The notes beneath the pieces are model-generated. The model did not search any database. It was not told the DNA's origin and saw only the letters and a program-made list of their open reading frames with translations. From Podarcis muralis (lineage: Eukaryota), in contig NC_135655.1 of assembly GCF_964188315.1 (NCBI RefSeq), forward strand, positions 85,436,001 through 85,500,000: a DNA stretch of 64,000 bases, read 5' to 3'. Positions 990 through 27,542 of the stretch are shown here, piece after piece; within the stretch, counting starts at the first letter, position 1; the number at the start of each line of letters is the position of its first letter. Position numbers and translations under genes: made by a program.

Positions 990-3900
990 AGCCCTTCCCT
1001 ACAACTCACCTGCCGACCAGAATCCTTGAGTCGGGCATGGATGCGCTGCACAAAAGCAGGGTCTCCCAGAAGGCTCAGTGGGGCACTCAGCTGCACATGG
1101 GCAGGATCTGTGGCATCTATCAAGTGCTGCCACTCCTCATCGCTATCCAACTCCTAAGAGGCAAGAGTGAGTCAGTGAGGACCACCACCATCAGAAAGCC
1201 AAGAGAGTACTTCCTTGCAACTATGCAAATGACTGTGGTACCTGGCCATGCGCTCACCTCAGTCTCCAGATCCACAGTGTCAATGCTGCGTCTGCCTCGT
1301 GCTTCTGCTCTGCCACTTTCTGGCCTCAGCTCTGGGAATTCCCGCTCGTAATCCTGTGTGATCCGATTCTCTCTGTCCATGAAGAAGAGGGATGAGAGGC
1401 TGAAGGCAGGCTACACAGCAATGAAATGTTCTCACCCCAGCTTTGGTTTTCTCTTGTAAAGGACCCCTGGATGGTTAAGTCCAGTCAAATGGAGTGCAGA
1501 ACTCCGACTATGGAGTGCAGCACTCATCTCACTTTCAGGCTGAGAGAGCCAGTGTTTGTCCGTAGACAGCTTTCCAGGTCATGTGGCCAGCATGACTAAA
1601 TCGCTTCTGGTGCAACGGGACACCATTAAGAGTGCCAGAGAGCACAGAAATGCCATTTACCTTCCCACCGCAGCAATACCTATTTATCTACTCACAATGG
1701 TATGCTTTCAAACTGCTAGGTTGGCAGAAGCTGGGACATATATATGTCAGCTAATTCAGTTGTTTCCAGTGTTGTCTTGGTCATTTGGTATTACTTAGAG
1801 CAACAGTATCTCTATCTGAAAATCCTGCAGGCTGGAACTTACGTTTCTATGTATAACTTTGTCCAGAGCTGTTTTGCTGAGCCTATGACTTCTACAGCAG
1901 TAAAAGATTTGGACCTTACTCTGATTCTGTGTGGTGTCTGGTACTGCCAGCTTTAGATCCACACTTCCCTTGCACGTGTATCATATACCACATTCCCAAC
2001 AAAATAAATGCATTTCAACTCCTTCTTCTCACCGAGGTGTGGGGGAAGATTCCTTTTGCTCCCACTCCATTCCCTTTCCTCCAAGGCTAAGGTGCCTCTC
2101 TTCTCCAGTGCCAGGAGCTGCCCGATTCACTTCTCTGGGATCTGTCTGAGCAAGGCAGGCTTTGCGTGTGTGGCTCTGGACCCCCTTGGGGGTTTCTTCC
2201 TTAAACGAAGCCCTGGATTTCCCCATCTCCTGTAAGAAGTCAAGCAACACAGGAAGATTCTAATGGACTGGACCCCACCATACTGTAAGTCGCCTTGCCA
2301 GCAATGGTATTACCTGCCTCTCACCTTTCTCCGAGCCTCCTGGGCCATCTTCTGCCGTGCTTTCCTCAAGATCTTTGACTGGCCACTGTGAGGGGCCAGC
2401 GAGTGTGTCTGCTGCTCTTTCAGGGCCTGCAGTTCAGGAGGCAGTTTGCTGGTGAAAGGGTTGGTAATGCCTTGATCTGCTGTGTCATCAATTACTGCAA
2501 AAGAGAAGGTCGGTGACTGGGCTTGCTTGAATTGGGCTCTGTAAGGAAAGGCAGATGCAGGAGCCAGATGGGAGGAAATTGCAAGTAAGCATGGCAGCTG
2601 GTACTCACCAGTGACCAGCCCTGCAATGAAGGGGTGATAGAGTAGCTCTGGCCAGGACAGGCGCTGCCGAGGGTCTTTCATCAACAGGCCTTGCAAGAAG
2701 CTCTACACAGTAATGAGAGATGGTCACTTGCACATCCTCACACTACTTATAGTCTATAACCCCAGCTGCTAATTTTACAAGGAAAACCTTGGAGCCAATG
2801 AAATTCCTTGGTCGCTGTGGGAAGAGTCTATTCAATCCATGCATACAAAAAGCACATTTTCCAGAATGTTCCCATTTTTTTCATTTTTAAGTTTCTAGCG
2901 CTGAAGATTACTGAAAAAAGTCTTGCAAACATGGCTGCATATTCTGCCTTAAGAAAGAAACCTGGTGGCCCCAATACCACCAAAACATGTTTGCACACAG
3001 AACTACATTCTTTGGCACAGATGTAGCAATGTGGTGTCCTTCAGACATTGTGGATAACATTTCCGTAACCACTGGCCATGCTGGCTGTGGCTGATGCAGT
3101 CAAAATTATTGGGGGGGCATCCCTGCCTTAGCAAGTACACTCATCCCAGTCTAATCCCCACAGGCAGTGGGGTAGGATAAGGATTGGAGAATGCACTTAA
3201 AAACTGTATTTCTACCTTTCAGACATACACACCAACAGTGTGAAAGAGGCCAAGTGGCATGAGTGAACAAAATCTAAGGTGTTCAAGCTTCCAAGGAGAG
3301 AACAAACTCAAACCACAGATACATACAGTGTAATGCCAGAGATACAGATAGCTGAGTTTGAGTCATGGGAAACCCAAAAGTATAAGCTTCTAGAGCAAAA
3401 TATATCTCTTATGGCCCTTAGCAGGGCAATGTACCTTACAGGGCTCTTGTGTGTGGATCAAATGAGACTAAAGAAGCAATGCATCTAAACCTGCCCTGAG
3501 ATCATTGGATGGAGTGTGGACGGCATTTAAGTACAGTTACCTTGAAGTTGGAGCTCATGTTTTTTGGCCACTTGATGGGGTCCTTGATGATCAAGCTCAC
3601 CAACTGGAAGATGCTGTTGGTGTAGAAGGGTGGTGTCCCCACACACAGCTCATACAGAATGCATCCCACTGACCAGAGGTCAGCTGTGTGGTCATAGGGT
3701 TTCTCTTCCACTAGCTCAGGCGCCATATACAGTGGAGTGCCTTTTATAGATGTCAGCACCATGGTGTGAATACTCATTGCACGGGCAAACCTTCCCAGGA
3801 AAGAAAGAAGACAACAACTGAGACCTTTCAGTAATGAGACCAGAGATTGGTTGGGGAGATCAGTTCTTAACATACCTACCCAAAGTCACAGAGCTTGATC

Positions 3901-5761
3901 ACTCCTCCTTTCCCAAGAAGGATGTTTTGGGGTTTCATGTCGCGGTGCAAGATTCGGTGGGAGTGCAGATAATAGAGCGCCGAGACCAACTGAGAGGCAA
4001 TATCTTGCACCTGAAAGAAAATGACAACCCTGATACTTTGCAAAGCCCATTTAATCCTGTAGGGATGCTCCACATCTCCAGCATAAAACTTCCATTCCTT
4101 TTTGTTATCTTTGCTGATGCCCCTCAATTGTGAATCACAAGTCCTTCCCCAACACACAGAAATCTACTTGTATTATCCTAAGACAATTAGATCTATTTTT
4201 ATCCTTGAGGGCAGCAGAGAGCAAGCATTTCCACTCTTCTATGTACCCTTCAGGTATTTGAAGACTGCAATCATGTCCATCTGCTGCTAGACTTCTCTTC
4301 TCCAGATTCAACGCTAGTTCAAAACACATATGTTCACTCAGGCATCACTTGAAGTGTGACTCCAGATATTCTTATTTATTTAGGATAAGGGCTGTAGCTC
4401 AGTGGTAGAGCTTTGCATACAGAAGGTCCCAGGTTCAATCCTCAGCATCTGGGAATGTCCCTTGTCTAGAACACTGGAGAGTCACTGCCAGTCAAAGCAG
4501 ACATAACTGAACTAGATGGACTAATGGTTTGACTCAAGGCAGCTTCCTATCTTCTTATCAATAATCATGGTGAATTTTATACTGAGTATGTAATGTTTTA
4601 TGGTTTATTGTGTTTTTATATTGTACCATACACCACTTTTGATATTCCAATTTGAGCAATATATAAATTGGTTAAAAAAATTAATAAACAAAAAGACATA
4701 CAGTACCAACTTCCTTAAACCTTTCCTTGATTTAAGCTGCTCTAATATCATCCCTGGTATCAAATTCAGAGGGATGGGTCTCTAGTTTCTCAGATCATCT
4801 TTTTAAAAATTAGGACTGTCTTGTAAGCACCTCAGTCACTATTCCAGGAAATCTAACAGGTTCATGTCAAAGTACACAGCTGGAGGGTTTATGGCCTAGC
4901 AAAGACTGACACCTACCCACACTCCAGCTACTCTCCCATTCCTGGAGTCATTCATCACACTGAATCCCCACTCACTCTTCTTGTCATAGTTACCTGCTCC
5001 TCAGGCAAGTTCCCATCATCCTCAAGGATCTGAAAAAGCTCCCCTTCAGCATAATCTGTCACTACCACAACCTGAAGGAGATAAACAAGACCAGAATGCC
5101 AATGAGAACATTTTCAAAGATGGGACACTTGTGGGTAGGGAATGACAATCTGACTAAGCTCTCTGTGCTGTTTGAAGCCAACAGGAAACCACCATCAAAA
5201 GAAGAGTGTGCAGCAGCTACCAACACATTCTTATTTGATGAAGGTGCCTATGGAGAGCTCCAAACTCTAAGTGTGTTGGGACATTCTTTGGATATTGTCA
5301 TTCTGCTGATAGGTCTTGGCAGGTTAATTGCCTGATGCAGCCTCATGAACCAATAGGCTTGATGTGGCAATCCAAACTTCCACAGACAAGATGTGTAATT
5401 TAGATAGCTGTTACCAAAATGGATAAATTTTAGTTCACTCCTCCTAGGTACTCATTGAGACATCTGGAGAACACCATATAACCTAAACTCCATCAAACAA
5501 AATGTAGCCATTTTCAGGCCTTTCTGCTTCTTGGGGGACTTTCCACAGAGCCAGGAAGACACCATTTTCTTCTTCACCTCCCACATTTAAAAAGGACTCC
5601 CAGCAAGTCCCTTACCTCTTTATCAGTTTCAAAACTGTCAAGCATCTGGACAATGTTGGGATGATGAAGCCCCCTCATGATCTCAATCTCTCGCTGCAAA
5701 TTCTTCAGCTCTTTCTGTGAGCGACCCACTTTAGGGATAAACTTCAAGGCCACCACCTGCC

Positions 5762-5800
<39 letters not shown>

Positions 5801-6067
5801 TAAAGGCTGGAAATGGGTCATACACTACTTTCCCCTCTGTTTGTCCCTGAAAAACTCACTGTGAAACAATGACCACTGCAGGCTCAGGAACAGACTTCTT
5901 ATATAGCAATCTTTGGAAACAAATCTCCCTAAATTAACTCTCCTGTTGATGAGGTCCATCCCCCTGTTCCCTTGTGCTCTTACCTGTGCACTGTATTTGC
6001 GACGCCCCTTGTAAACTCTTCCAAAAGAGCCTTCACCAATCATCTCCAAGACATGATACTTCTCCAT
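144..6067 (-). CDS. STK36: Serine/threonine kinase 36 (Fused homolog), 5' part; gene continues beyond the window start
   Basis: Ten phase-consistent GT-AG exons on the - strand: 6067-5984, 5756-5616, 5071-4994, 4010-3880, 3790-3541, 2702-2609, 2494-2325, 2229-2033, 1372-1258, 1153-1010, then 323-144 (eleven segments in total). Translation [69 protein letters not shown] matches the Fused/STK36 kinase domain; position head-to-head with RNF25 fits known synteny. Confidence 0.96.
393..564. mobile_element. hAT-type MITE in an STK36 intron
   Basis: Terminal inverted repeats CAGTGGCGTAG(C/T)GTGG...CCACACTACGCCACTG; perfect 8-bp flanking duplication CCCACACC at 385-392 and 565-572. An 8-bp TSD is the hAT hallmark. 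Confidence 0.85.
950..987. repeat. (GT)19 microsatellite
   Basis: Directly visible in the sequence. Confidence 0.95.
1457..1737 (-). mobile_element. Older, diverged Sauria (Squam1-type) SINE fragment
   Basis: Shares diagnostic blocks (gtcatgtggccagcatgac, tttaccttcc, cctatttatctact, actgctaggttggcag) with the young copy at 23951-24311. Confidence 0.7.
4389..4552 (+). mobile_element. tRNA-derived SINE (Squam3-like)
   Basis: A-box-like ggctgtagctcagtggtagagc and B-box-like ggttcaatcc, followed by a non-tRNA body ending aaggcagcttcctat. Family name from recall. Confidence 0.6.
5762..5800. repeat. (AAT)13 microsatellite abutting an STK36 splice acceptor
   Basis: Directly visible; reads (ATT)13-GGCAG|GTG on the - strand. 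Confidence 0.95.
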
Positions 6068-6899
6068 GATGGGAATGTGGAGAGGGGTGGGTATTAATCT
6101 GAAAGGGCAGAGACAAGAGATTAAGTTAAACATGAACAGTAAATGAAAAATGTAAGCACAATGGCAAAGCATGTCAATTCACAATACCATTTTGCAAAAT
6201 TATTATTATTATTTATTATATTTGTATACCTCCCTTCATCTGAAGATCCCAAGGCTGTTCACAACAGAAAAATGCAAAATAAGCATACAAATCATACACA
6301 TGTGGTCAAAACCAAGAATCAAAAAGAAAAAAGGGAGCAAAGCAGTCAGAAAAGGTTGGGGAAAGGGGAATAGACTCTGTCAAAGCCAATATGGCATGCA
6401 TATCAGGCAGACAGCTCTAAAGAGGGGTCCCAGATCTCAGAATAGTTGTGCTTTTTGCATCTCCAGGCAAAAGCGGTTTTTTTCACGTGATGCATGAGAA
6501 GAAAGCCCTCCAACCAAGAAGCTATTGGAGGAGATATCAAGTCCTTGCAATGCTGTAAAACCAGTCGCTTAGCCACCCATAAAGCATGCAAGTTCCAGGA
6601 CATTAGGATATAACCGAGCCATCCATGACCATCCAAATATTTCAGGGACAGTCTCATAACAAAATTAATTTGAGCAAGCACCTTCACCGAAAAAGAAGCC
6701 AATGCAAGGCATGTTTTTAATGCTTCCCAAGAAAAAAGTTAAGGCACCCCGGCTCCAAAGTGCCCATCAGGAGTCCATCAACACACACAGTCTTTTTAGC
6801 CATCTTCTTGCCTGCACAACTCTCCGAATCCCTTTTGCTATACTGTATAAAGTCCTCACCCGGCCACGGCGTCTTGAGGAGCCTCCTAAGGCGACGATC

Positions 6900-13300: not shown

Positions 13301-13574
13301 TTTGAGAGAGGAGAAAAATGTTGTGGGGAAATGGACGCAGGAGCAGAAAAGTCAAGCCCATGACAGTGAGGAAGTAAACTTGGAGGTTAGCCATAATGAG
13401 CTCAGGGGGTCGGCCAAGTGGCAGGGTCGCCGTGGGATGCAGGATTGTAGGCAGTGGGAAAAGACCAAGGGCAGAGAACATGGATCTTATATTAAAGTGC
13501 CAAGAGGCCGAGGACGCACCACATTGAACTCAAGGAGAGAGCTGCAGAGCCAAGAGACTGAGGATGGCTCCTAG
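7269..13574 (+). CDS. RNF25: E3 ubiquitin ligase RNF25 (RWD domain plus RING-H2), 514 aa
   Basis: Ten GT-AG exons in consistent phase: 7269-7318, 8367-8441, 8867-8969, 9063-9130, 9895-9964, 10066-10137, 10557-10697, 11922-12011, 12358-12492, 12834-13574 (1545 nt). Motifs LPSEVEVLESIYLDEL, NPRGLSDEQI, RING CVIC..CYHYFH..C..CPVC, GGIIDPEAERNRYFISL and C-terminal EDGS match human RNF25. Confidence 0.96.
11363..11672. mobile_element. Tc1/mariner-superfamily (Tc2/pogo-like) MITE with internal palindromes
   Basis: TIRs CCGTATTTTTC(G/A)CTCTATAAGAC; TA on both flanks (11361-62, 11673-74); perfect 62-bp palindrome at 11466-11527. Confidence 0.85.
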
Positions 13575-13784
13575 CAGGCAGGAGTTGAGGCTTGAGGGGC
13601 TTTTTCTAGGGGTGAACACAGGTGATTTTGTTGTGCTGTCAACCATTGGCCTGGATTGTAAGGAAAAGCAGATCTGTCTTGAAATTCTCCTCTCGGCCAT
13701 GGGCGGTTTATGTCTTGCAGAGTAGGGGTATATTGTCCTCAGAGATCAGAATTACTGTCTGTGGACTGTAGTAAATAACTGAAT

Positions 13785-13790
13785 AATAAA
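13785..13790 (+). terminator. Probable RNF25 polyadenylation signal
   Basis: AATAAA about 210 nt after the RNF25 stop codon. Confidence 0.5.
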
Positions 13791-15499
13791 TGGTAGCCAA
13801 ATGCTATTGCCCATGGGTAAACTGTAGGATCTTACAGTGAATCAGTGCTGTGTAGAGGGCTGTTTGAGGCTGAATCCCTGAACTAAAAGCCAAGCTTGAA
13901 AAATAACTATTAAGTAACCCTGTTCTAAAATAGGTGCTAAAAATAGAAGGACTATAAGGGAGTACAGGTCTCCTTGTTTACTGTCCAGAACTATGGAGAG
14001 GACTTGCCATTAATAGTGTCACTATTTTTAGACATGCCTTATTGATGGTATTGGCATATGTGAAAAGAGTGGACTTGAATCAACATTGACTTGGTGGCTG
14101 TTGACCACAGAGGGTTCTTTAAGCCCCCCAACTGTGGCCAGACTGAATGTTGGAGTCTCCCACTGCCTCATTGTAATTGGCTAATGTTCAGTAGTGATTG
14201 ACCTTGAACTGCAAACATCAAACATGCCTATTCTAAAGAGCCTTTAAATTATAAGAAGTCCAACTCCTTACTCACCCAGTAGTTGGATTTGGAGCTAGTA
14301 TTGGCAACAAAGGCTTCAGCTCCAGGTACACCAAGGCTCTTGTCTTTGCCTGTTTTCACAAATGTGATATCCTGCAATGGTTTACTAACTGTAATCCTGT
14401 CCAGAGTTCACGTGACTTATGTTTTGGGTCTTATCATCTTTGATTCGAGCCAAATTTGGTTTTGTTGGGGTGAGAAGTCTCTCATGCTCAGCTGGCTTTC
14501 CCCTCCTAACCTTATGGCTGTGTGTATGTGCATTCACCCACACACCATTCAAGAACAGCTCTACTCTCCATTTGGGAGGGTAATACCAATGTACCTACCT
14601 ATTTTTAGGCTACACAGTCCCTGTCATCTCCCTCAGCAAAATGCAGCCTTGTCTTCATGGGTATTTCTGCTCAGAGGAGGAGTCTGTAGCAATATGGAGT
14701 ACATGTGGCCACTATGCAAACATTTTGAACAGACTTTCCTCCACTTGTATTTCTATTTTGTCACATATATATGGCCTTCCTCCCCCCACAACAAATTTTA
14801 CCCTAGGCTGTGTGAAAGTTCCCAAGCTGCTTAAATTCCTTATATGTCTGCAAAATGTCCCCCCACCCCTCCCCAAGTGAAGCTTTGCCAGACTTCGTAA
14901 TTTTCCTTTTCTGCTTAGCCACAGTAACATTGTAGATGTGTGACAACTTTACAGAGCACAGTGGCCAAAATGACCTTACAATAGAAGTGTGACTGATTTT
15001 AAACCAGTTCATGCTAGAGGCTAAAGGATGTCATTACTTATTTGCATGCATGCACATATACCAGTTTGAGCAGTTCTGCCTATTAAAAGGATTGATGTGA
15101 GATTGATTTACCTCCCTGCACTGTGGTGAGGTGGAATTTGTGGTGATGTGATGCAAAACAGGAGTATTAAAAGCAATTTGAGTAAACCAATCTATGATTC
15201 TCTTTCGTGGATAAAGAACATAGCTGCTGCTGTGCTGCATGTGATGAGACCATTCAACATTAGAAACCATCTAAAAAGAGGCAGGGAGGTAATAACCTAT
15301 GACCCATGTAGTTTAGCTAAAATGAGGAACCTTTTGATTATAAATGAAAAACAATCGGGTTCTAATCTGGACATCTTTCTGTTGGATTCACATTTTCTTT
15401 TTTTTTCCTTCTTCTTTTTTGTAAACTATTCTTCTAAGGAGAAAGGCTGCTTCATTTTGCACCACTTGAAACTTCTGAACAATAATGAATGGTAGCCTA

Positions 15500-16790
15500 C
15501 ATAGAATATAAAACATGGGTAACACAGTATCTAGATCCTGATTGGATTTTCTGGACAGGGTTATAATACCGTTAAAGAAATTGGAGTTCTTGTTGAAAAT
15601 ACACTGAAATGGATATACAAAGAACTCTGGCCACAAGTTTCAATACAACGAATAGTTCCTACTCGAGAGTTGAAAAGAAAAACGTGTATATTCTGCTAAG
15701 AATAACAGTTTGAAGCTAATAGTAAATTTAAACACAACGTGTGAGTACGATAGTTTTAAGGTAATAGTAAATTTAGATACAACGTTTAATTGCAGAAATA
15801 ATGTAATTTCAAATATGGAGTGATATAGTATAAAGGTACATAAAATACCAGTAAACAACAATTGTTTTATACAAGTCTCAATGGCAGTCAAAAAGAGTCC
15901 ATATTATATAAAATCAGAACAAAGAATAAAGAATCAAATAGGGCCAAAAAGGAGTATCCGGAGTGTGAATCAGATGTACGACTCAGTAGTGGTGACCAGG
16001 ACAGGGCCCTGTTTCGGAGTAAACGCCTTCTTCAGCTGGTAATATCAAATAATATGTCAAAATAGAACAAGATTCTTCAATACCATAGATCATAAATATA
16101 ATAAAGTATATACATACTAAAGTGTATTAACACATATCATGATATTTGGTTCCATACCTCGGTTTTTTGAGGACTATAAATCTGTTGGAAGTCTATATCA
16201 TATAATTCTTTTGTGTTTCTTTTTTGACTTGCGTCTAGAAATAAGAATTTACAAGAGTTATTATTTCCAGTCAAATTATTTGTGAAAAACGGACAACAGA
16301 TGAGTGTTTTCTCACCTTAGATAATTGAATCCAAGTTTTCTTGCGTTTCTCTGTGCGTTTTCTATTAGGGAGTGAGATCATTGTCTTATATGTGTGTCTG
16401 TGGGGGAGGAGGATAGGCTCTCCCTTCTTAAAGGTGTAAACAGAGAAGGGATTTAAAGTCCAAGGTCATCTATAGTGGTTTTTTCAAAGAAAAGAACTGT
16501 AGTCTTGATGTTCATTCAAGCCCTTGGGGGACATCGTTTCAAACAAATGAATATATCGTGCTTCCTGTTGTAACAATAGTCTATCAATATTTCTCCTGGT
16601 ATATTAAATCTACTTTTGGTTTCCAGATAATGAAGAAGACAAAATCCTCCTCCATATGTTTTTGCTGTATATAATGTTCCACCATTGGGGCTTCTAGCAC
16701 TCTATCGGATCCTGATTGTTCTGCCTTCCTTTTTACCAATTGCTCTCGATCCTTTAAGGACTTTAGCCCTCATTTCATAAACCCACCCCA
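15500..16790 (-). mobile_element. Decayed, 5'-truncated Penelope-like retroelement (GIY-YIG endonuclease C-terminus plus 3' UTR/pLTR); boundaries approximate
   Basis: - strand translation EAPMVEHYIQQKH..FFIIWKPK, a frameshift, then NIDRLLLQQEARYIHLFETMSPKGLNEHQDYSSFL* (16591-16484) resembles the Penelope endonuclease C-terminal P.GLN motif. A hammerhead lies downstream on the same strand. Confidence 0.7.
15995..16040 (-). ncRNA. Minimal type I hammerhead ribozyme (Penelope-associated)
   Basis: - strand reads ACCAG CTGAAGA A-GGCG-TTTA-CTCC GAAA CAGGGCCCTG TC CTGGT. It has the CUGANGA and GAAA core, a 5-bp stem I (ACCAG/CTGGT), a short stem II, a palindromic stem III and a GUC cleavage triplet (predicted cut between 16000 and 15999). 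Confidence 0.8.
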
Positions 16791-17272
16791 TTTTCCCCCA
16801 TCATGTCCACATCCAGCAATTTCTTTTATAAAATTTCTGAAGTGCAGGATCTGTTTCTTCCTGAACCTTCCTAGTCTTTCCCATGCTTTCGCCTATTTGT
16901 CTGTGATATATTAGAGTTACTGTCCCACCCTGGGTTAAAACTAATACCTCAAGTATCTTCTCTCTCCACCCCCACCCCCCCAATGTATGAAAGAACAATT
17001 CCCCCTTTCCATGTTTTGCTGTTGTAACATTGGCAAGAAGAGCAAGTGCTGTTTCACACCTGGCTGTTGCTATAAATAGAAGTGGAACCACCCGCCTCAA
17101 GGAGAACACTCAATGGCACTAACAGTACGTCCTAACCCAGCCTGCATGGAGAACCTCATTGTAACCATTAACTCAGATCAAACAGACAGGAATCGTTAGA
17201 GATCTGGCAGTGCTGTTTACGGCATACGTAGCTTACTGCGCGCGCACACATATATATGTGCTTGTTTGTTTT

Positions 17273-17340
17273 TGTTTAGTCGTTTAGTCGTGTCTGACTC
17301 TTCGTGACCCCATGGACCAGAGCACGCCAGGCACTCCTGT
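17273..17340 (-). mobile_element. RTE-BovB LINE 3' end fragment
   Basis: gtttagtcgtttagtcgtgtctgactcttcgtgaccccatggaccagagcacgccaggc resembles the antisense BovB 3' tail as recalled. Confidence 0.55.
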
Positions 17341-17560
17341 GAGCGGTAGTCTTGTAATCTGGGGAACCAGGTTCGAGTCTCCGCTCCTCCACATGCAGCT
17401 GCTGGGTGACCTTGGGCCAGTCACACTTCTCTGAAGTCTCTCAGCCTCACTCACCTCACAGAATGTTTGTTGTGGGGGAGGAAGGGAAAGGAGAATGTTA
17501 GCTGCTTTGAGACTCCTTAAAGGGAGTGAAAGGCGGGATATCAAATCCAAACTCTTCTCT
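17341..17560 (+). mobile_element. CORE/MIR-like SINE remnant
   Basis: B-box-like ggttcgagtc, CORE-like gtgaccttgggccagtcacacttctct..cctcactcacctcacag, and tail aaggcgggatatcaaatcc. Confidence 0.5.
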
Positions 17561-17879
17561 GAGGCCCGGGGCAGGTATGCCTGGCTCCCCCCACTCTACA
17601 AAGGCTTCCTGGTCACCATCTTGAATCATGATGACAGACCAAAACATGACTTTGGCATGACTTCACCCAATTTTTGGTGTGACATGTCCAAACTCACAAA
17701 TTACACTATCTGTTTAAAAATAACAACAACAGGTTCCTAAAAATTCCCAGGCAGTGCCAGGCACCCCCTGCTAATAAAAGTGGGGGAACCATCTTAGTGA
17801 TATTTTATATTAAATCCTGATGGGATTCTGATGCTGATGTACTGGGGATGCTGTGAAAATTATTCTGTGCATGAATGAG

Positions 17880-17960
17880 GAACACTTACCTGTGATTCCT
17901 GCATAGCAGGGGTGGAATAAATGAGCTTTGGAATCCCTTCCAAGTCTACAATTCTACGAT
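17880..17960 (+). mobile_element. CR1 LINE 3' end remnant
   Basis: gatgagc-like ...cccttccaagtctacaattctacgat, typical of the CR1 3' terminus with an ATTCTATG-like tail. Confidence 0.45.
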
Positions 17961-18503
17961 CCCACAATAAACACCCTTTGGAAGCACCCCAAAAGCCCAA
18001 GACGTACGAGAAAACAAATGATTATTTCCCTTTGGCTTTGACACATCAAACAGGGTTTTAAATGCAATAATTCCTACTTGGAAATAATTTATACAGTGGT
18101 ATAAAGAGGCATGACATGGGTCTGGAGATTCTTGCATTTCATTCAATATTGTGAAACAATGTTTTTGTTCAGGAATCACATGAGACGCAACCAGAACTTA
18201 GTACTAAAGTGAGTTACTTAAGCTGCATATATACCTTTAAAGCATATTCTGCTTCTGGGCACTGTCCTTTACTCCTTGCAGAGTTACGATTCCCAGCAAC
18301 CCTTAAAAAAACTGCAGTATCTAGAATTCTTTGACGGAAAGAATGTGCTTTGAATATAAAAGTGTAGTGGATATACTCCAGTGGGAAGGGAAGGGCAGGA
18401 GAGTAGAGTGTGAAGGGATCGTGGTTTATCACCAGCAAGCATAGATTGAAAGGAGTGGATTGAGGCTGTAGGAGAGCAATCAGCTCATAGGCCAAACAAA
18501 CTA

Positions 18504-18769
18504 CAGTGGTACCTCAAGTTAAGTATTTAATTCGTTCCGGAGGTCCATACTTAACCTGAAACTGTTCTTAACCTGAAACACCACTTTAGCTAACGGGGCC
18601 TCCTGCTGCTGCCGCGCCGCCGGAGCACGATTTCTGTTCTCATCCTAGAATCATAGAATTCTATGATCCTGAAGCAAAGTTCTTAACTTGAAGCACTATT
18701 TCTGGGTTAGCGGAGTCTGTAACCTGAAGTGTATGCAACCTGAAGCGTATGTAACCCGAGGTACCATTG
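18504..18769. mobile_element. Tigger-like (TcMar) MITE
   Basis: TIR CAGTGGTACCTC..GAGGTACCATTG; TA on both flanks (18502-03, 18770-71). Confidence 0.85.
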
Positions 18770-19021
18770 TAGAAGCTTTATTCTTTCAAATGGTAACTAC
18801 CTAGACTCAGTACAATCTGTTGGAAGAGACTTTGCCCAAAAAACACACTGTAGAAGGCTCAGTCTAGTGCTGAATGGGGAGCATTTGCTGGCTAAAGGAT
18901 GTGGTGGGGAGGTTGCTGTTCTCAGGAAACTATCCTGACCTTAGTTGACTATCAGGTTATGAGAAAGGGCTAAATCAAGCGATGAAGCATCCCATTTGCC
19001 TTTCTGCATCCATCATCCCAG

Positions 19022-21432
19022 GTTGCTGCAGATCAGATCATCTTCCACGATGGACCAATAGCAAGTGATGACAAAGACAATAAATGTATCTGCAGCATAG
19101 AGCTCCCCGACACTACTTTTCCTTCACATCTGATGATTATCCTGGAAAACGCTTATAAGAACCTGAGTACTATTTATGAAGAAGAAGCGAGCAAGGTAAG
19201 GGGGCACACTTCGGCACATAGTATGCCAAATATTTATTCCCTGCCTTGAATCACTAATGCTGTCTAGTTCTGACTGTTTCCAGCAGCTAAACAATATAAC
19301 ACAACACAATCAGTGACTACAGTATCATATGAGCACTGATCCAGAGCATATTTTCTACAGCGTTTATATTTGCTTACATGTAAGATTGGCTTGTTAAGAA
19401 ATTGAACTGCATCCTTCTCATATTATTTCTTACAAGTCTGGCTGATGAAGAATTGATCAAGATTGGCTGATGAAGCATTGAACGAAACAGATTGGTTATC
19501 CAGAAACTCTGTTCTGGAGATATTTGGTGACAGATTATGTATATATCAAACTTTTGAATTATTCTACCGCGACTGGTGAAGAAGATTTAGAGACTTTGGT
19601 TGTGATTTCTGATCATTTGTATTAGTCTATAAATAGTGTTTAGTGCCATTGTTATTGGCCATCATGCTGTGTTATATTGTTCAGCTTGTCTATATTGCAA
19701 CACAGGGGTCTGTTTACGGATTACTGTTTCCAGCAGCTGGCAACACTACACAGGGGAATGGTACTGGCGGGGGGGGGGGGGCGTGTGTGTGACAGAATGT
19801 GGCTCACAGATCTTTCAAGGCATGTTAACCCTTCCTCCAAAGCACTGTTACTGGATAGCCTTGGTAAAATAGTCCACCACCACCCACTATAAACTAAATT
19901 TGTCAGTCACAGAAGTGCTCCGAGTTCTCCCGTCTCCACAGCCCAATGTTTGTGAAAGTGCAAAGTTGAAGTCTACTCATTGTCTGGATACACCTTCAAA
20001 ACTGAGTGATAAAAGAATGGTTGTTCCAGAGAAAAGGACAAGCATGGAAGCAACAATTGTAATGAAATGGTTGTTCATGATTTGTGGAAATATGTTTTCA
20101 GTATCCTGCTAAGTGTGTGTCCTGCAAATTTCTCTAGGCTATGAAACTCCAGACAGACTTGGCATCATTTAATAGTACCTTGGAGAAATTAACCGCAACA
20201 GTGCGTCAGGTTGAGATGGAAGGTATCAAGGATGAAGAAACTTATCAAGACCTCCTAGAAAAAATTAATCATACGAAGCGATGGGCTCGGGATCTGACTA
20301 ATGCTCTAAGTGCAACTGGTGTGGGCATTACATCTTTAACCGAACAGGTAGGTACAAAATGTTTGGGAGCACAGCAGTTTGAATTGTGCTTGCACATTGT
20401 ACTGAATACACCAAGAGTGGTGCTCCTGTTTGAGAGGATTCAAACCTGCTTTAGAAAGGGCATTTGGGGGGCTGTTTGGGGCTCTTCAAGGAAACTTTTA
20501 AAATATTTCTGTGCAATGCTGAGTACTCCATGGCTAGAGAGCTGCTTCAGGGAGCAGGAAAACATGGGATGAGAACTTTGCCTATTTTAATGTTTACCAC
20601 TAGCATAAAGTCTCAAAAGAGGTTATTCCTTCCTTACCTCTCCCCATTATTATTTTTTAAAAAAACCAGATACTTTCAACATTCCATGGCTCATGGACCT
20701 ACCGTAATTAAGAATGTTGTGAGCAAAGGCAAAAACCTCTGCTCCAAGGCATGTAAGATGGAGCCAAGCATCATTTTCATCAGGGATTTGGGGACTGGTA
20801 GTCCTACTAACTTAGTAGCACTAAGCCCATCCCTGAGCCAAAGGATGCTGTGCCAAGGCTCTTTGAGCACCTGCTGCCACAACCACTATCCTCTTTCCTG
20901 GCCTCAAAGGTGATTTCTTAGCAATTGAGGACAGGGATGTGAGGAGGGAGGCTGTGCAGAACACAAGTGCCTTCAAGCCTTTTGCAAGTGCTTGCACTGA
21001 CTTCTTGCAGAAAGCTTAAGCTCACAAAAGTGCAATCCTTTGGAATTCAAACAGTGAGATATTCATGCATCCCTAAACTTAATGACTAGATGCACCTAAG
21101 TCCTGTTCAAATGTTCTTCAAAAGTGGGTGAGAATAGCACATGGAGGGGAGGGGAGTTGGGGCCATGCACTCACATCTCCATCTACAGCATCCCCACTGC
21201 CCCTCCTCTGACATACACACATTGAATGAGGAGGTCTGGAAGGGGACCTCAGTGGCTGAGCATATCGTAGATCCTCCCTGCAATTGGAAAACCAGTACTA
21301 GCAGGTTTCCTGATCTCAAGGAGGATTCTAAGGGCATTCCCTTAGGCAACATCCACACCATACATTTGAAGCACATGGCTTCCCCCAGAGAATCCTAGGA
21401 AATGTGTTTTGTGAAAGGTACTGGGAACTGTA

Positions 21433-21483
<51 letters not shown>

Positions 21484-22340
21484 TTTATACCCCGCCCATC
21501 TGGCTGAGTTTCCCCAGCCACTCTGGGTGGCTCCCAATCAGTGTTAAAAACAGTACAGCGTTACATATTAAAAACTTCCCTGAACAGGGCTGCCTTAAGA
21601 TGTCTTCTGAATGTCAGGTAATTATTTATCTCTTTGACATCTGATGGGAGGGCGTTCCACAGGGCGGGCGACACTACCGAGAAGGCTCTCTGTCTGGTTC
21701 CCTGTAGCCTCACTTCTCGCAATGAGGGAACCGCCAGAAGGCCCTCGGCGCTGGATCTCAGTGTCCGGGCTGAACGATGGGGGTGGAGATGCTCCTTCAG
21801 GTATACAGGACCGAGGCCGTTTAGGGCTTTAAAGGTCAGCACCAACCCTCTGGGAGGTGTAAACTACAGTTCTCAGGACACTAACTGCCCAATTTCTGGT
21901 TGAAGCCAATTGGGCCTCTGGTTGATCTCAGTGATGGGCTGAGATATAAGGGCTCAGGCAGGCCTTAAGATATCCTGGACCCAAGTTGTTCAGGGTTTTG
22001 AATTTTTGTGAAAACTGCAGGTTCTTTTCACACATAGTACATCTTTATTGTATGATGCTTAGCTGGGGGGTAGGATTTGAGAAATAAAGGCATGCCCCCT
22101 TAGCACCTTTGAGATATTTCCCAGCCATTCAGAAGCCTTGGAGAAGATCCAGCTATTAAGAACAATCAGTCAGTGTCTCTGGGTCATAGAATTATAGAGT
22201 TGGAAGGGACCGCAAAAGTCATTTAGTCCAACTTCCTGCAATGCAGGATCTTTTTGCCCAATGTGGGGCTTGAACTCATGTCCCAGAGATTAAGAGTCTC
22301 ATGCTCAATCCATACAATAACAAGAGAGGTAATTGGTTAC

Positions 22341-22402
<62 letters not shown>

Positions 22403-25213
22403 TGTTTGTGCATGCTTTAGCCTCTCTCATTCAATCACTCATGAAGCTGTCAAACACATCTACCACCACAACACACAGGGAGACGCTGCAGTAGAAAATT
22501 GCTTGGGGCTGTTCAATTAAACATGTGCTAATATATTTCAGGTCTCCAATGTCTCCAGTATTGTGTGGGAACTAGAAAAGTTTGACGAGAACAATGTGTT
22601 GTTGACACATAGGGAAATAGCCACTCTCAAGAAACAACTGGCCGATTGCGAAGACTCTGTTACAAATCCCAATTCTGGCCTCTCTCCCTCTGGAAACTGG
22701 ACTCCAGAGTTTGGTGAGTCCTACCGTGTGATTGTGGGCTGGAACTTCTCCTTACATTGGTTTGTCTATAAGCTACATTATCATCATTATCATCACCATT
22801 ATCACCGTCACCAGTATTAATATTTATTTGTTGCTTTTTTCACAAAGGTGGCTGAAAGCAGCTTGTGCTGTAAAAACCACCATTAAAAAAAAAATCTAAG
22901 AAAAAGAATAACATCACGGCATAAAATGCTCATTGTATATAAAAGAGCAGATCCAAGTCAATCTGCCCCACTAAAAATGTGAGTGGAAGAAGACACCACA
23001 AACATAGTTAAGTACTCTCCCAAATGAAGGCCCAAAAGCCTAGGAGAATTAAAAAAATGTTTTTGCCTGGGACCTAAAGGCAGATAACGCAACCAGGCAT
23101 GCCTCCCTGGGGAAAGCGCTCTACAAACGGGGAGCCACCACTGAGAAGGCTTGCTTCAGTCTGGTCACCCCACAAACTTAATCCAGCTTCTTCTCACAAC
23201 TAGCACATCCTCAGCGAGCTATTTGAGGCACCACCTGACCCAGGAAAATTTTACCGTCATTTAAGCTTTGAGCTCTTTCACTAGATCAGTTCTCAGTCTG
23301 TACCGGTAGAGATCAGGGTAAAAGGAATTTCCTAATAATTACTGGATTACCTCCCACTTAATAGTTCTTTATATTATAAAGAGGCCTGCAGAGCCCTTCT
23401 GGTGCCACAGGGTCCCCCCGCCATTTGACATTAGACTTGAAAGAAGCATTCTGTTGCACTTACTAATAGAATGTAGCATGTGCTTGTGCTTAGTGCTCAC
23501 AGCAGTTCTCAGGTTTGCAAATGATCCCAAAAGGGATGATGACCACCTGCTTTAGTGAGAATTTTGGAAGGCAAACATGTAATGAACAGCTGATCAATGA
23601 CAGTACAGAGGAGGAATTGGGAAGCATTATGCAGAGAAAACACAGCAGGGCAGAGGAGTCTGGTTTGGGGGCCTGACCCGTTTTCTAAACGCAGTGGGAT
23701 AAAACTTGGCAGAGCTTTTGAAACCAGCAGAATGCCTAACATGGTCACAGAAAACAAAGATGATTTAGTTACTTATCTTGTAAAATTTATGCACCTCTTG
23801 ATTATTAAAAAAACCAAAAAAAAACACAAAAAAAAACCTCAGAGCAGTTTGAAGGCGGAGAAAAACTTGTCAAGAGGAGCCACAAACAAAAGTAATTCCC
23901 TTTCTATTCCCTGGCAGGTAACTGCGACAACAAGGTGTTGATAAACGTTAAAGGTAAAGGTACCCCTGCCCGTATGGGCCAGTCTTGACAGACTCTAGGG
24001 TTTTGCGCCCATCTCACTCAAGAGGCCGGGGGCCAGCGCTGTCCGGAGACACTTCCGGGTCACGTGGCCAGCGTGACAAGCTGCATCTGGCGAGCCAGCG
24101 CAGCACACGGAAACGCCGTTTACCTTCCTGCTAGTAAGCGGTCCCTATTTATCTACTTGCACCCGGGGGTGCTTTCGAACTGCTAGGTTGGCAGGCGCTG
24201 GGACCGAGCAACTGGAGTGCACCCCGCCGTGGGGATTCGAACCGCCGACCTTTCGATTGGTAAGTTCTAGGCACTGAGGCTTTTACCCACAGCGCCACCC
24301 GCGTCCCTGTCTGATAAACGTTAGCAAGCCACTTATAGTGAAACTCAACTGGCGAGGTTTAAGCTACAAATTCGGAGCTTGGGGAAAGGACTTTGCTGTT
24401 GGAAACAAGACTCCTGACGCATACTGGGTTGCCCCGCTCAACACAGACGAGCGTTTGTTGGAAACCTACTGCATCTACAACTATTCCGACCTGCTGTTCT
24501 ACAAAAGCCAAATAGAGAAAAGCCTTTCTCAATTTGTTGGGTTCACCTGGAACTACATCAACTGTGGGCAGGGAAGCGGAACTATTTTGTACAACGGCAG
24601 CTTCTATTACAACTGCTACAACTCCAGGAACCTGTGCAAGCTGGATGTGGCAACCAGTAAGGTCCACCGCAAGACCGTCGAAGACGCCGTGTTCAACAAC
24701 TGGTACTCTTATAGCGGAATCAATTGGCATGACTTTGATTTCTCCGGGGATGAGAATGGACTGTGGCTCATTTACTCCACGGAAAAAAACAAGGGGAAAA
24801 TAATGATTGGGCAGCTGGATCCCAATACTCTGACAATAGTCAAGTCATGGCAAACCTCACTGTACAAGCCTAAGGCAACTGGTACCTTCATGATCTGTGG
24901 GGTGATGTATTCCTTGATGCGGGTGAGTGAACACAAGGAGAAGAGCTTTTACAAATATGACACTAACACAGCCACAGAAGGCTCTATGGACATCATCCTG
25001 GAAAAGCTCACAGGCACACCGCAAAGCATAAGCTACAACCCCAATGATCACAAGCTATACATGTACAATGATGGCTACCTGGTCAGTTATGATGTGATAT
25101 TCCGACGCGTACCCCTGTTCCAAAAGAGGAGCGTGGTCAGTGTGAAAGAGCCAGATACTTTTGCGATGGTCAGTAAAAACCACTTCAGCTCACGAGACTT
25201 TGCCATAGCCTGA
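19022..25213 (+). CDS. Olfactomedin-4-like secreted glycoprotein gene; last exon interrupted by a SINE, first exon unresolved, may be a young pseudogene
   Basis: Phase-consistent exons 19022-19195 (KCICSIELPDTTFP, cf. OLFM4 CQCSVSLPDTTFP), 20138-20347 (coiled coil), 22542-22713 (LEKFDENNVLLTHREIATLKKQLADCE), and a terminal exon 23918-23950 + 24324-25213 (GNCDNKVLINVSKPLIVKLNWRG..YWVAPL..GQGSG..DFDFSGDENGLWLIYST..FMICGVMY..SISYNPNDHKLYMYNDGYLVSYD). The exon and phase pattern mirrors OLFM4 as recalled. About 492 aa without the first exon. Confidence 0.85.
21433..21846 (-). mobile_element. L2-clade LINE 3' fragment with (TTA)n tail
   Basis: ORF VLTFKALNGLGPVYLKEHL..RTLRSS..RAFSVVSPALWNALP..FRRHLKAALF is the typical L2 ORF2 C-terminus; (AAT)n tail at about 21433-21482. 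Confidence 0.85.
22185..22310 (-). mobile_element. CR1-tailed SINE (Squam2-like)
   Basis: Antisense CR1 tail catagaattatagagttggaaggga.. joined to a tRNA-like head (gggcttgaactc). Confidence 0.5.
22345..22406. repeat. Compound (CT)n(GT)n microsatellite
   Basis: Directly visible. Confidence 0.9.
23951..24311 (-). mobile_element. Full-length young Sauria (Squam1-type) SINE inserted in a coding exon
   Basis: 5' end GGGACGCGGGTGGCGCTGTGGG (A box), GGTTCGAATCC (B box), (ACCTTT)n 3' tail; exact 12-bp TSD TGATAAACGTTA at 23939-23950 and 24312-24323. Confidence 0.92.
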
Positions 25214-25876
25214 AAGAGAAACAAGGCCAGGCACGCACAACATTTACCTATTGGCAAATACATATTTTAAATGGTAAAAGTCTTGATTGTAAGGCCAGCA
25301 GACAGATTCTATCTTTAAAGGGTATAATTAAACAAGCCCTTTTCTTCACAGTGCAGTCAAGTGTCTACCTGTGTGAAGAGAACATGTCACAGGGTTGGCT
25401 GCTCTCACCATTGAACCTCCACTGCCTTTCCCTCGCACCAAATGATTCTGGCAGTAACAGGATTAGGGCTTTGGTGTGGAATCTGCTATAGATCATGCCA
25501 CTGAGTAACTAGGAGTTCATAAACAGCAGACATACACCCTGAAATCACCTTGCGTGTGTTGTGTTTGTGTGTGTCTGTCCCCTCCGCCTAGTTATGACAC
25601 CTTTTGGGCCTCTCCTCAGGTGTTAACATTTGCCATCTGGAGGACATAAGTTCCACAACACCTGAGCTTCACATTTATTCATTTTCAAGAGTTGCATTGT
25701 AGGAGTTATGTTGGGTCGCTCTTTATTTTCTTTACAAAAAGGTGGCCTCACTGAGGTGGACATGTGGATGGCATCATCCTCATGATTATCTCATCCCGCC
25801 TAAACAAATCCATGCATGCAAACAACCCTTTTCCTGGGGAAGCCATATGCAAAGCGGTCTCGGGGTTTGTTCAACG

Positions 25877-27542
25877 TCAGGATATAAGAGCTTGCACGTT
25901 CTTAAGGGCTGCGTCCGGATCCGCCTTGTATAGCATGAAGTGGCCTTGGACTTGCGCGGCACTGATCTGATCAGAGGCAGACACGGCCTGTTTGGCAAAC
26001 TCCTCGGCCGCAGCTGCTGGCTGGTCTGGGTAGAACCTCTGGAACATGCGCCCGAGCTGCCACTCTGAGCAGTACCCCACATACTGCTTCAGGTCCACCC
26101 GGCCAGGGCGAACTAGGGCTGGATCGAGCCTGCAGGTAAAGAGGAGAAGACAAATGAGGCTCAGCAAATGCTCAGGTGGGAAATATGGTTCTCTATGCTC
26201 CTCTCACTTGGGGTATCACCTCCTTGTTCTCTCTCCAACCCCAAGAAGATACAGGGCTAGGGGAATCTTCTCTCCCCTTTATTTTTTTGAGCTACTCTCT
26301 AAAAGAATATAAAGTAACAGTGCCTTGTGATTTAACTGCACCCACGTCTTGCTGCACTCACCCATCATGCACCTCTTTCTCCATACCTGCCAAGTTACCC
26401 ATCCCCTCCTACAATCTCAGAGGAGCCTGCATGGAACCAGGAACAGTAAACAAGGACAGAACCAGATCTTCAGCTTCTGTGTTAAATGCTGGAAACCAGC
26501 ATGACCAAAGGAGGCAGAAGTCCATATGTATATATACCCCAGACCACTCCCTAACAAGCATGACCCCAGCGTTACCCAAAACCTTACCCAGCCAGTTTTA
26601 ACTGGCTGACCCTGTCTGCTGAGCATTTGCTCTTCTACCCTACACATGACTCCTTCAGCACCAGGCTACATGGCTGGCAGAGTCCTGTGCTTGTGGGAGA
26701 GGATGTGTCACAGGTCTTGGAGACTACAAGAGCCCCAAGATAAGATTCTCTTCCGTCTTCTCCTATAGTATCATCTTCTGGAACAGGAAGTGTGTCTTCA
26801 TTCCTGCCGCCTTCCTCCTTTTTATACTTAAAATAGTTACCAGCTGGTCCCCAGAAAGGCAGACTTTGCCTCATAAAGACAGCACTTCCAAGGGCTGGGA
26901 CACAAACTGCCCTCCTCTGTTACTCACTGCAATCTCCTTCTTGACTGAGTTACAAGGAAGCTCATGGAGTTGCCTTGTGTGAGCTAGGGATGGACGGATC
27001 AGTTTATTTGGGGTCCATGTCCAAAGTGTTACAGGTGTTAAGTCTCCTCTGTTGCTTTTCCACTTTAAGATCTGTATTTTTTTTATTTAAAAAATCCATA
27101 CAAAAATTCGTATTTAAAAATGCATTTTATTATAAATGCATATTTAAATAGTATTTATCGCAGGGTATGCATCTCTAAATGCATTTCCTCCTAAAAATAA
27201 TAATAAATCTTAATGCATTTTGGGAACCAAGGACAGTATTGCAAAATTTGGGGGAGTGGGGAAGCTGAAGGATAATTGTGAATTCGTTTGGGAGGTACAA
27301 ATTTGGCTAGCTTGCTTGAAAATGCAAACAAAACAAAACTCTCCTCCACCCCTAGCTTGTCCTCACCTCAAAAACACCAATGGAGACATCTTAGGCACTG
27401 TGTTACTTGAGGAATCCTTGGTCCCACCAAGGGAAGTGAACCCTTTGGATCGAAGTGGCCTACCACCAAAGGGACTCCATTTGCAGGCTTCCTCCCAGCC
27501 ACTGAGCGGTGAAGTAGGCTGATTTGCTGGAATACTGGTCCT

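Follow-up and report, generated by a model that had tools for sequence, protein, structure and literature searches.

An olfactomedin gene on the plus strand between RNF25 and BCS1L in the lizard Podarcis muralis is probably the lacertid ortholog of paralog A in a squamate cluster of three genes (A, B and C), a frog-type olfactomedin lineage that appears to have been relocated and triplicated and that is eroding in this genome. The gene lies in a 64,000-nucleotide stretch (NCBI RefSeq assembly GCF_964188315.1, contig NC_135655.1, positions 85,436,001 to 85,500,000 of the forward strand), hereafter the window, whose first letter is position 1. In our view this copy is most likely either a gene that is dying or a unitary pseudogene of very recent origin. 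A unitary pseudogene is recognized when a gene that relatives have in intact form bears disabling lesions, and such lesions are found here: the promoter and exon 1 are deleted, and a short interspersed element (SINE) in the last coding exon brings a TGA stop into frame at 23986-23988. Transcripts of the window copy cannot encode a secreted full-length olfactomedin.

A reading of this DNA made from the letters alone (the sequence-only reading) had placed a four-exon olfactomedin gene, beginning at 19022, in an RNF25-BCS1L interval of about 12 kb. The location was borne out, with a measured interval of ~12.3 kb, and so was the exon count: a tblastn search with the nearest database protein, the 'olfactomedin-like' protein P0001 of Zootoca vivipara (506 aa, 90% identity in the exon encoding the olfactomedin (OLF) domain), matched its residues 14-506 to four collinear blocks. 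The CxC multimerisation motif that had been described is present, as CIC, in the first of them. The exon at 19022 is also real, but it is exon 2 and does not begin the gene; the ancestral exon 1 has no counterpart in the window. After Zootoca, the closest proteins are 'olfactomedin-like' and 'olfactomedin-4-like' entries of many lizards at 59-73% identity, followed by turtles and amphibians at ~50%; at the DNA level, identity of the window to Zootoca and to Lacerta agilis is ~90-93% in either case, a distance that suggests a third lacertid genus. The exons, the SINE and its target-site duplication (TSD) are as follows.

Exon 2: 19022..19195, plus strand; 58 codons, phase 0, encoding VAADQIIF...KCICS...EEEASK; acceptor cccag, donor AAG/gtaagg; tblastn match to P0001 residues 14-72.
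Exon 3: 20138..20347, plus strand; 70 codons, helical/coiled-coil region; placed by tblastn and a spliced RNA contig.
Exon 4: 22542..22713, plus strand; 57 codons and 1 nt, donor G/GTGAGT, phase 1; placed by tblastn, the sequence itself and a spliced RNA contig.
Exon 5a: 23918..23950, plus strand; start of the ancestral last exon, cag/GT AAC TGC GAC AAC AAG GTG TTG ATA AAC GTT A.
TSD copy 1: 23939-23950, plus strand; TGATAAACGTTA, the final 12 nt of exon 5a.
SINE: 23951..24311, minus strand; 361 bp, tRNA-derived, Squam1/Sauria type, antisense to the gene.
TSD copy 2: 24312..24323, plus strand; TGATAAACGTTA, 12/12 identical to 23939-23950.
Exon 5b: 24324..25213, plus strand; remainder of the OLF propeller and C-terminal tail, stop codon 25211-25213.

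Exon 5a encodes G-NCDNKVLINV, the conserved disulfide cysteine and first strand of the OLF domain (GKCDNKVMLNI in Zootoca), and the first 13 positions of the Pfam OLF profile PF02191 are encoded upstream of the SINE. Downstream of it, the open reading frame (ORF) at 24338-25213 (291 codons) matches profile positions 14-246 of 246 with E=5.7e-64 and 216 bits (cut-off 23.9 bits), its closest relatives of solved structure in the PDB being the OLF domains of myocilin, noelin and latrophilin. The 'complete beta-propeller' of the sequence-only reading therefore stands as far as the presence of an OLF domain is concerned, but the domain is not contiguous: the 361-bp element splits the conserved cysteine and first strand from the rest. 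The insertion follows the first strand, which bears C201, and precedes P212 (Zootoca numbering), and the codons of the intradomain cysteine pair C201/C402, invariant in 54 sequences, are both present and are separated by the SINE and the premature stop. Translation in the gene's frame reads through 12 codons of the element, KGKGTPARMGQS, before it ends.

In reverse complement, the head of the SINE is tRNA-like and contains an A box and a B box (GGTTCGAATCC); the tail is TACCTTTACCTT. Squam1/Sauria SINEs measure ~360 bp, contain the A and B boxes of pol III, have short direct repeats at the 3' end and a target-site duplication, and occur in high copy number (PMC10058329, which cites Piskurek 2006 and Kosushkin 2008). 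The element shares with them its length, both boxes, 3' short direct repeats and a very high copy number, its sequence words reaching a depth of millions in the DNA run; the class was assigned by these traits rather than by consensus alignment, and other copies in the compared loci are ~77-78% identical. The copy in exon 5 is polymorphic and interrupts coding sequence. ARAGORN called no tRNA, and an Rfam search of window positions 15000-25300 at E<=0.1 found no tRNA and no hammerhead family. The sole Rfam match, to CrcZ and far below the gathering score, was dismissed as noise. Intron 3 has low-complexity sequence at 21440-21520 and 22330-22420, namely an extended (TAT)n-type run together with microsatellites of the (GA)n/(GT)n kind, and the CrcZ match falls on the first of these.

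Zootoca carries the empty site. Its DNA is collinear with the window up to 23950 (L001 16395-17976) and again from 24312 (L001 17965-20245), and the 12-bp overlap of the two matches is the TSD. In addition, we compared the contigs of four sequencing runs (X11, DNA; X15, X17 and X19, RNA) with window positions 18990-24989. The DNA run contained both SINE junctions. X15 record 15 begins 31 nt inside the SINE and continues through exon 5b, across the 3' junction; here the SINE is either part of the RNA or part of DNA carried into the library. X17 record 20, by comparison, joins 23938 to 24312 and so has precisely the empty site, with one TSD copy, in a set of contigs that differ from the window by ~0.4-4%. 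Because an RNA library of the same species label has the exact empty site, the SINE is a recent insertion that is unfixed and polymorphic; of four haplotypes seen, those of the assembly, X11 and X15 have it. A second polymorphism in exon 5 is a 3-bp in-frame deletion private to the assembled haplotype: the window lacks one Ser codon at 24480, where X15 and X11 carry CTC after 24480 and so have the codon found in Zootoca.

The second lesion lies upstream of exon 2, next to a larger rearrangement that involves paralog B.

Promoter/exon-1 deletion junction: 17802..17827, no strand assigned; flanks collinear with Lacerta agilis L005 and Zootoca L001.
Replacement of the B region: 15569..17556, no strand assigned; stands for ~18.8 kb of Lacerta agilis (L005 3110-21892), from blastn of L005 against the window.

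Window positions 17557-17802 correspond to L005 21893-22142 and L001 7479-7715, and positions 17827-18502 to L005 25226-25941 and L001 10448-11145. From the collinearity of these flanks it follows that ~2.7-3 kb, with the TATA promoter and exon 1, are missing between them. In Zootoca, exon 1 consists of the ATG and a 13-codon signal peptide, MFGLLLCLAVAYL, followed by a GTGAGT donor, and this exon 1/TATA module is conserved in Lacerta agilis (95%), Sceloporus (80%) and gecko (72%); it has no match anywhere in the 64-kb window. The secretory signal peptide, present in the DNA of Zootoca, Lacerta and Sceloporus, is accordingly absent from the window copy. We scanned 13500-19021 for an exon that might supply another signal peptide (ATG...GT, phase 0, hydrophobic core), with nothing convincing: the candidates were weak, the best having a poor donor or sitting in the 3' flank of RNF25, and no replacement leader could be proposed. 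The reading frame of exon 2 closes upstream at 18986.

The left breakpoint (17802/17827) coincides with a Squam1-like SINE of Lacerta agilis (L005 22144-22494) that is 78% identical to the exon-5 copy, and it is possible that a repeat mediated the deletion. The paralog A of Lacerta agilis is annotated as a 456-aa protein starting from a Met inside exon 2. Its DNA (L005 24690-24923, 26247) has an intact-looking exon 1, MFWLLLRLAVASL, with a GTGAGT donor and a TATA region, and the short model is probably an annotation miss, not a lesion.

Paralog B is missing altogether. The whole B gene of Lacerta agilis (L005 10001-20240) falls inside the segment absent from the window; all that is left of that segment at 15569..17556 is repeat fragments and an island of 127 bp (17115-17239) that is still collinear, in ~2 kb of mostly unrelated sequence, and tblastn found no second OLF copy in the 64-kb window. 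The loss of both exon 1 and B might be an artefact of assembly, through collapse or mis-joining, the real genome then having the order RNF25-B-A-BCS1L. Both junctions do lie in repeat-rich sequence of a single assembly, but the window contains no N runs, and to the left and right of either junction the sequence is collinear with that of Lacerta and of Zootoca. Moreover, the SINE, the other odd feature of the locus, is confirmed in independent DNA and RNA contigs, and two family searches returned no A or B protein from the window's own genome from a protein collection in which two other lacertids are represented. We therefore consider an assembly artefact very unlikely.

Exons 2-5 without the SINE comprise 492 open codons, with no stop or frameshift, and all of the clade-conserved cysteines (8/8) are kept, together with one additional new cysteine. 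The window branch has ~4.4% divergence, at which a fully neutral sequence would have acquired at least one stop from substitutions with P=0.93; since the 492 codons are still open, any inactivation must be recent. Between the window and Zootoca, the ratio of nonsynonymous to synonymous substitution rates (dN/dS) is 0.78 by NG86 and 0.96 by maximum likelihood (ML) overall, 1.4 and 1.8 in exons 2-4, and 0.48 and 0.59 in the OLF exon, exon 3 being the fastest-evolving part of the gene. The comparison of Zootoca with Lacerta is equally high (exons 2-4: 0.82 by NG86, 0.99 by ML), and fast evolution is thus a lacertid trait and no mark of the window copy; for the same reason, we discarded high dN/dS as proof of a pseudogene. 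An excess of damage was likewise discarded, as the five private changes at clade-invariant sites (two in Zootoca, 0-15 among orthologs) are not distinctive.

We also found that the locus is transcribed and spliced, as exons 3 and 4 are spliced together in X15 record 12 (20344 to 22539, equivalent to 20347 to 22542 through a shared CAG). This record also extends 52 nt into intron 2, and pieces of intron 4 occur at similar depth, indicating that much of the RNA signal is unspliced. Exon 2 has zero depth in X15, X17 and X19, but we do not take it to be untranscribed, since other RNA-labelled runs from these studies (X16, X25 and X26-28) contain 40-67% of its words.

Several of these observations weigh against the view that the gene is dead or dying. 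Transcription persists, as seen from the exon 3-4 splice and from the exon-2 words in several RNA-labelled runs; some promoter must thus remain, and there may be an alternative first exon that went unrecognised. A SINE-free allele exists. The remaining exons are wholly open, dN/dS in the OLF exon (0.48-0.59) is below 1, and the overall value of 0.8-1.0 is common to the apparently intact Zootoca and Lacerta copies. The deletions of exon 1 and B appear in one assembly as set against two other species, and the function of the squamate genes is putative, by family resemblance.

On this basis the gene could still be functional, driven by an alternative promoter and a new first exon, with either a common SINE-free allele, such as that of X17, or removal of the SINE as a new intron. 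The 492 open codons with all conserved cysteines, the OLF-domain dN/dS of ~0.5 and the RNA evidence from exons 2 to 4 would fit such a gene, but no signal-peptide exon is found in the 13.5-19 kb region, where the frame of exon 2 closes, and the conserved TATA/exon 1 module is gone. With regard to splicing, a phase-compatible pair does flank the SINE (donor AAAG/GTAAAG at 23953/54, acceptor ttatag before 24339), and the element may be undergoing intronisation, which would rescue the frame with a net loss of four residues. The acceptor, however, follows a weak, purine-rich tract, and splicing from 23953 to 24339 would delete SKPLI, including the P212 that is invariant in 54 family members. This joint does not occur among the contigs listed, X15 record 15 passes without a break from the SINE to exon 5b, and the SINE is carried by three of the four haplotypes seen. 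Continued function is thus unlikely, although it is the alternative to which we give most weight, and a very recent unitary pseudogene or dying gene remains our preferred reading.

To place the gene, we built an ML tree of 62 rows under the LG+C20 model. True OLFM4 (skink, turtles, birds and crocodilians) formed a clade with support of 100/100, as did squamate A and squamate B+C, and A+B+C were monophyletic with 100/99. Geckos occur within each of A, B and C, and the triplication is therefore older than crown squamates. A non-OLFM4 group (93/95) united A+B+C, turtle olfactomedin-like with anuran olfactomedin (including bullfrog P0158), and amphibian 'olfactomedin-4-like' proteins, in an inner trichotomy. 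In approximately unbiased (AU) tests, grouping A/B/C with squamate OLFM4 was rejected (delta lnL 74, p=5e-5), which rules out their origin as duplicates of squamate OLFM4; grouping them with turtle olfactomedin-like was allowed (p=0.23), and a position as sister to all OLFM4 was not rejected (p=0.14). In Tiliqua, the OLFM4-like gene is on another chromosome than A and B. OLFM4 proteins (e.g. P0095, P0275, P0273 and P0287) have the same subfamily-level architecture and ~45-48% identity in the OLF domain, but they form their own 100/100 clade with their own squamate member.

The window gene is thus a diverged, non-OLFM4 olfactomedin, as had been proposed from the letters alone, and the OLFM4 clade excludes it from being the true single-copy OLFM4 ortholog. 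The suggested origin in an ancient lineage lost in mammals agrees with the tree as to age, given the grouping with turtle olfactomedin-like and frog olfactomedin; the loss in mammals is putative. The other suggested origin, a squamate-specific transposed duplicate, fits in that the position looks squamate-specific, and fails in that a duplicate of squamate OLFM4 is rejected. In its full form, the sequence-only reading described an intact, unrecognised extra OLFM4 paralog acting as a mucosal, skin or chemosensory matrix protein. An OLF domain, a CxC motif and a helical region are indeed present, and the RNF25-BCS1L interval in human presumably holds no olfactomedin gene. Against this, the NCBI annotations of Zootoca, Lacerta agilis and Sceloporus already have an 'olfactomedin-like' or 'olfactomedin-4-like' gene at this position, the AU test excludes a squamate OLFM4 duplicate, and the gene is not intact in the window. 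With the promoter and exon 1 gone and the SINE splitting the gene, a working mucosal matrix protein is not to be assumed here, and we see hardly any chance that this description is correct.

Gene order among relatives bears on how the cluster may have arisen. The squamate orthologs of A (Zootoca P0001 and Sceloporus undulatus P0006, 'olfactomedin-4-like') have the same exon structure, lie tail-to-tail with BCS1L and show 59-90% identity in the OLF exon; the window copy differs from them in lacking the promoter and exon 1, in the SINE in exon 5 and in the deletion of its neighbour B. Lacerta agilis has the order RNF25-B (P0130)-A and Zootoca B-A-BCS1L, and in Sceloporus C lies ~14 kb upstream of A, which is followed by BCS1L; the full order RNF25-B-(C)-A-BCS1L is a composite of these three. 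In gecko, B and A are on one strand, 109 kb apart, with no neighbour gene within 10 kb in their flanks. The turtle gene (Mauremys, L003) lies between an Ig/fn3 receptor tyrosine kinase gene and a SAP/SPRY/AAA_33 gene, and the Spea gene (L006) is directly upstream of a SPRY/AAA_33 gene; we take these neighbours to be AXL and HNRNPUL1, respectively the kinase and the SAP/SPRY/AAA_33 gene. The HNRNPUL1-like downstream neighbour is common to Mauremys and Spea, in the same orientation. In Bufo, only tandem OLF copies were seen, which say nothing about synteny. Frog and turtle genes thus adjoin an HNRNPUL1-like gene, whereas RNF25 and BCS1L flank those of squamates.

In the simplest reading, an old tetrapod olfactomedin gene beside HNRNPUL1 would, on the squamate stem, have been transferred to the RNF25-BCS1L interval and have given rise to three copies, and the cluster would descend from the archetypal frog-type olfactomedin, not from OLFM4. 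Erosion in the window genome comprises the deletion of B and the loss from A of its conserved TATA promoter and signal-peptide exon, and on the assembled haplotype a young, polymorphic SINE ends the reading frame ahead of the propeller. A word-indexed protein search, which cannot prove absence, found no snake protein and no lacertid beyond Zootoca and Lacerta agilis in clades A, B and C, despite the many annotated genomes of these animals, and no member of Lacertoidea or Varanus in clade C. There are hints here of repeated losses of A/B/C in squamates.

The intact protein can be judged from the Zootoca ortholog. In the 54-sequence alignment, C35/C37 of the CxC motif are nearly invariant, and C201, C402 and P212 are invariant. 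The AlphaFold model of Zootoca A has a mean predicted local distance difference test score (pLDDT) of 80 and comprises the following predicted parts.

Residues 3-13: hydrophobic helix.
Residues ~14-47: flexible CxC segment.
Residues 48-99, 104-154 and 160-182: long helices (~135 residues, 48-182).
Residues 204-472: propeller, pLDDT >90.

The propeller of this model superimposes on the OLFM1 OLF structures 4xat and 6qhj with a template modelling (TM) score of 0.93-0.94 and a root-mean-square deviation (rmsd) of 1.7-1.8 Å. The predicted five-bladed beta-propeller fold holds for the Zootoca ortholog and not for the interrupted copy of the window. The coiled coil of the sequence-only reading corresponds to a long helical region, modelled as helices in the ortholog, whose pairing as a coiled coil is putative. 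The intact form would thus combine a signal peptide and the CxC motif with long helices and an OLF propeller of five blades, which a Cys-Cys bond closes. Taking bullfrog olfactomedin and OLFM4 as analogues, we infer that such a protein would be a secreted, N-glycosylated, disulfide-linked oligomer of mucus or extracellular matrix. Bullfrog olfactomedin, the archetype of the family, is a glycoprotein that is secreted into olfactory mucus and polymerises through disulfide bonds (Anholt 2014, PMC4206993). It resembles the squamate protein in its CxC motif, helical region, OLF domain and several N-glycosylation sequons and falls in the same non-OLFM4 group, but identity between the two is ~40%.

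In the remainder of the locus, STK36 is on the minus strand at ~2300-6200 of the window, RNF25 (plus strand) ends at ~13574, and the last coding exon and stop of BCS1L (minus strand) lie at ~25877. The olfactomedin gene and BCS1L converge, their stop codons lying ~660 bp apart (25213-25877), and the 3' untranslated regions (UTRs) may overlap or abut. X15 record 15 reaches ~25496, ~500 nt beyond 24989.

The gene family and the gene itself are already known, and automatic annotation lists the gene in many lizards. In the literature searched, we found nothing relevant on squamate or reptile olfactomedin and no mention of a conserved HNRNPUL1-like microsynteny of frog-type olfactomedin. What seems to be undescribed there is a squamate-private cluster of three non-OLFM4, frog-type olfactomedin genes, the move of this cluster from the HNRNPUL1 neighbourhood to the RNF25-BCS1L interval, and its dismantling in at least one lacertid, where the process is still at an early stage and the SINE knock-out is polymorphic. 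The locus also serves as a warning for annotation, as the open 291-codon OLF ORF does not imply a working gene.

Taken together, our results describe a modest but clean case of gene relocation, expansion and ongoing gene death. A more speculative view, to which we give little credence, is that A/B/C are the relocated and triplicated olfactory-mucus olfactomedin, serving nasal or vomeronasal chemoreception, and that the window species is a segregating natural knockout through the SINE allele and the loss of B and of the leader of A. What the archetypal olfactomedin does is a question that experiments have never answered, according to Anholt 2014 (PMC4206993), and because its function was never directly tested, natural loss-of-function lineages could be useful. 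If the knockout reading were true, these lizards would offer a field system for testing what the archetypal olfactomedin does.

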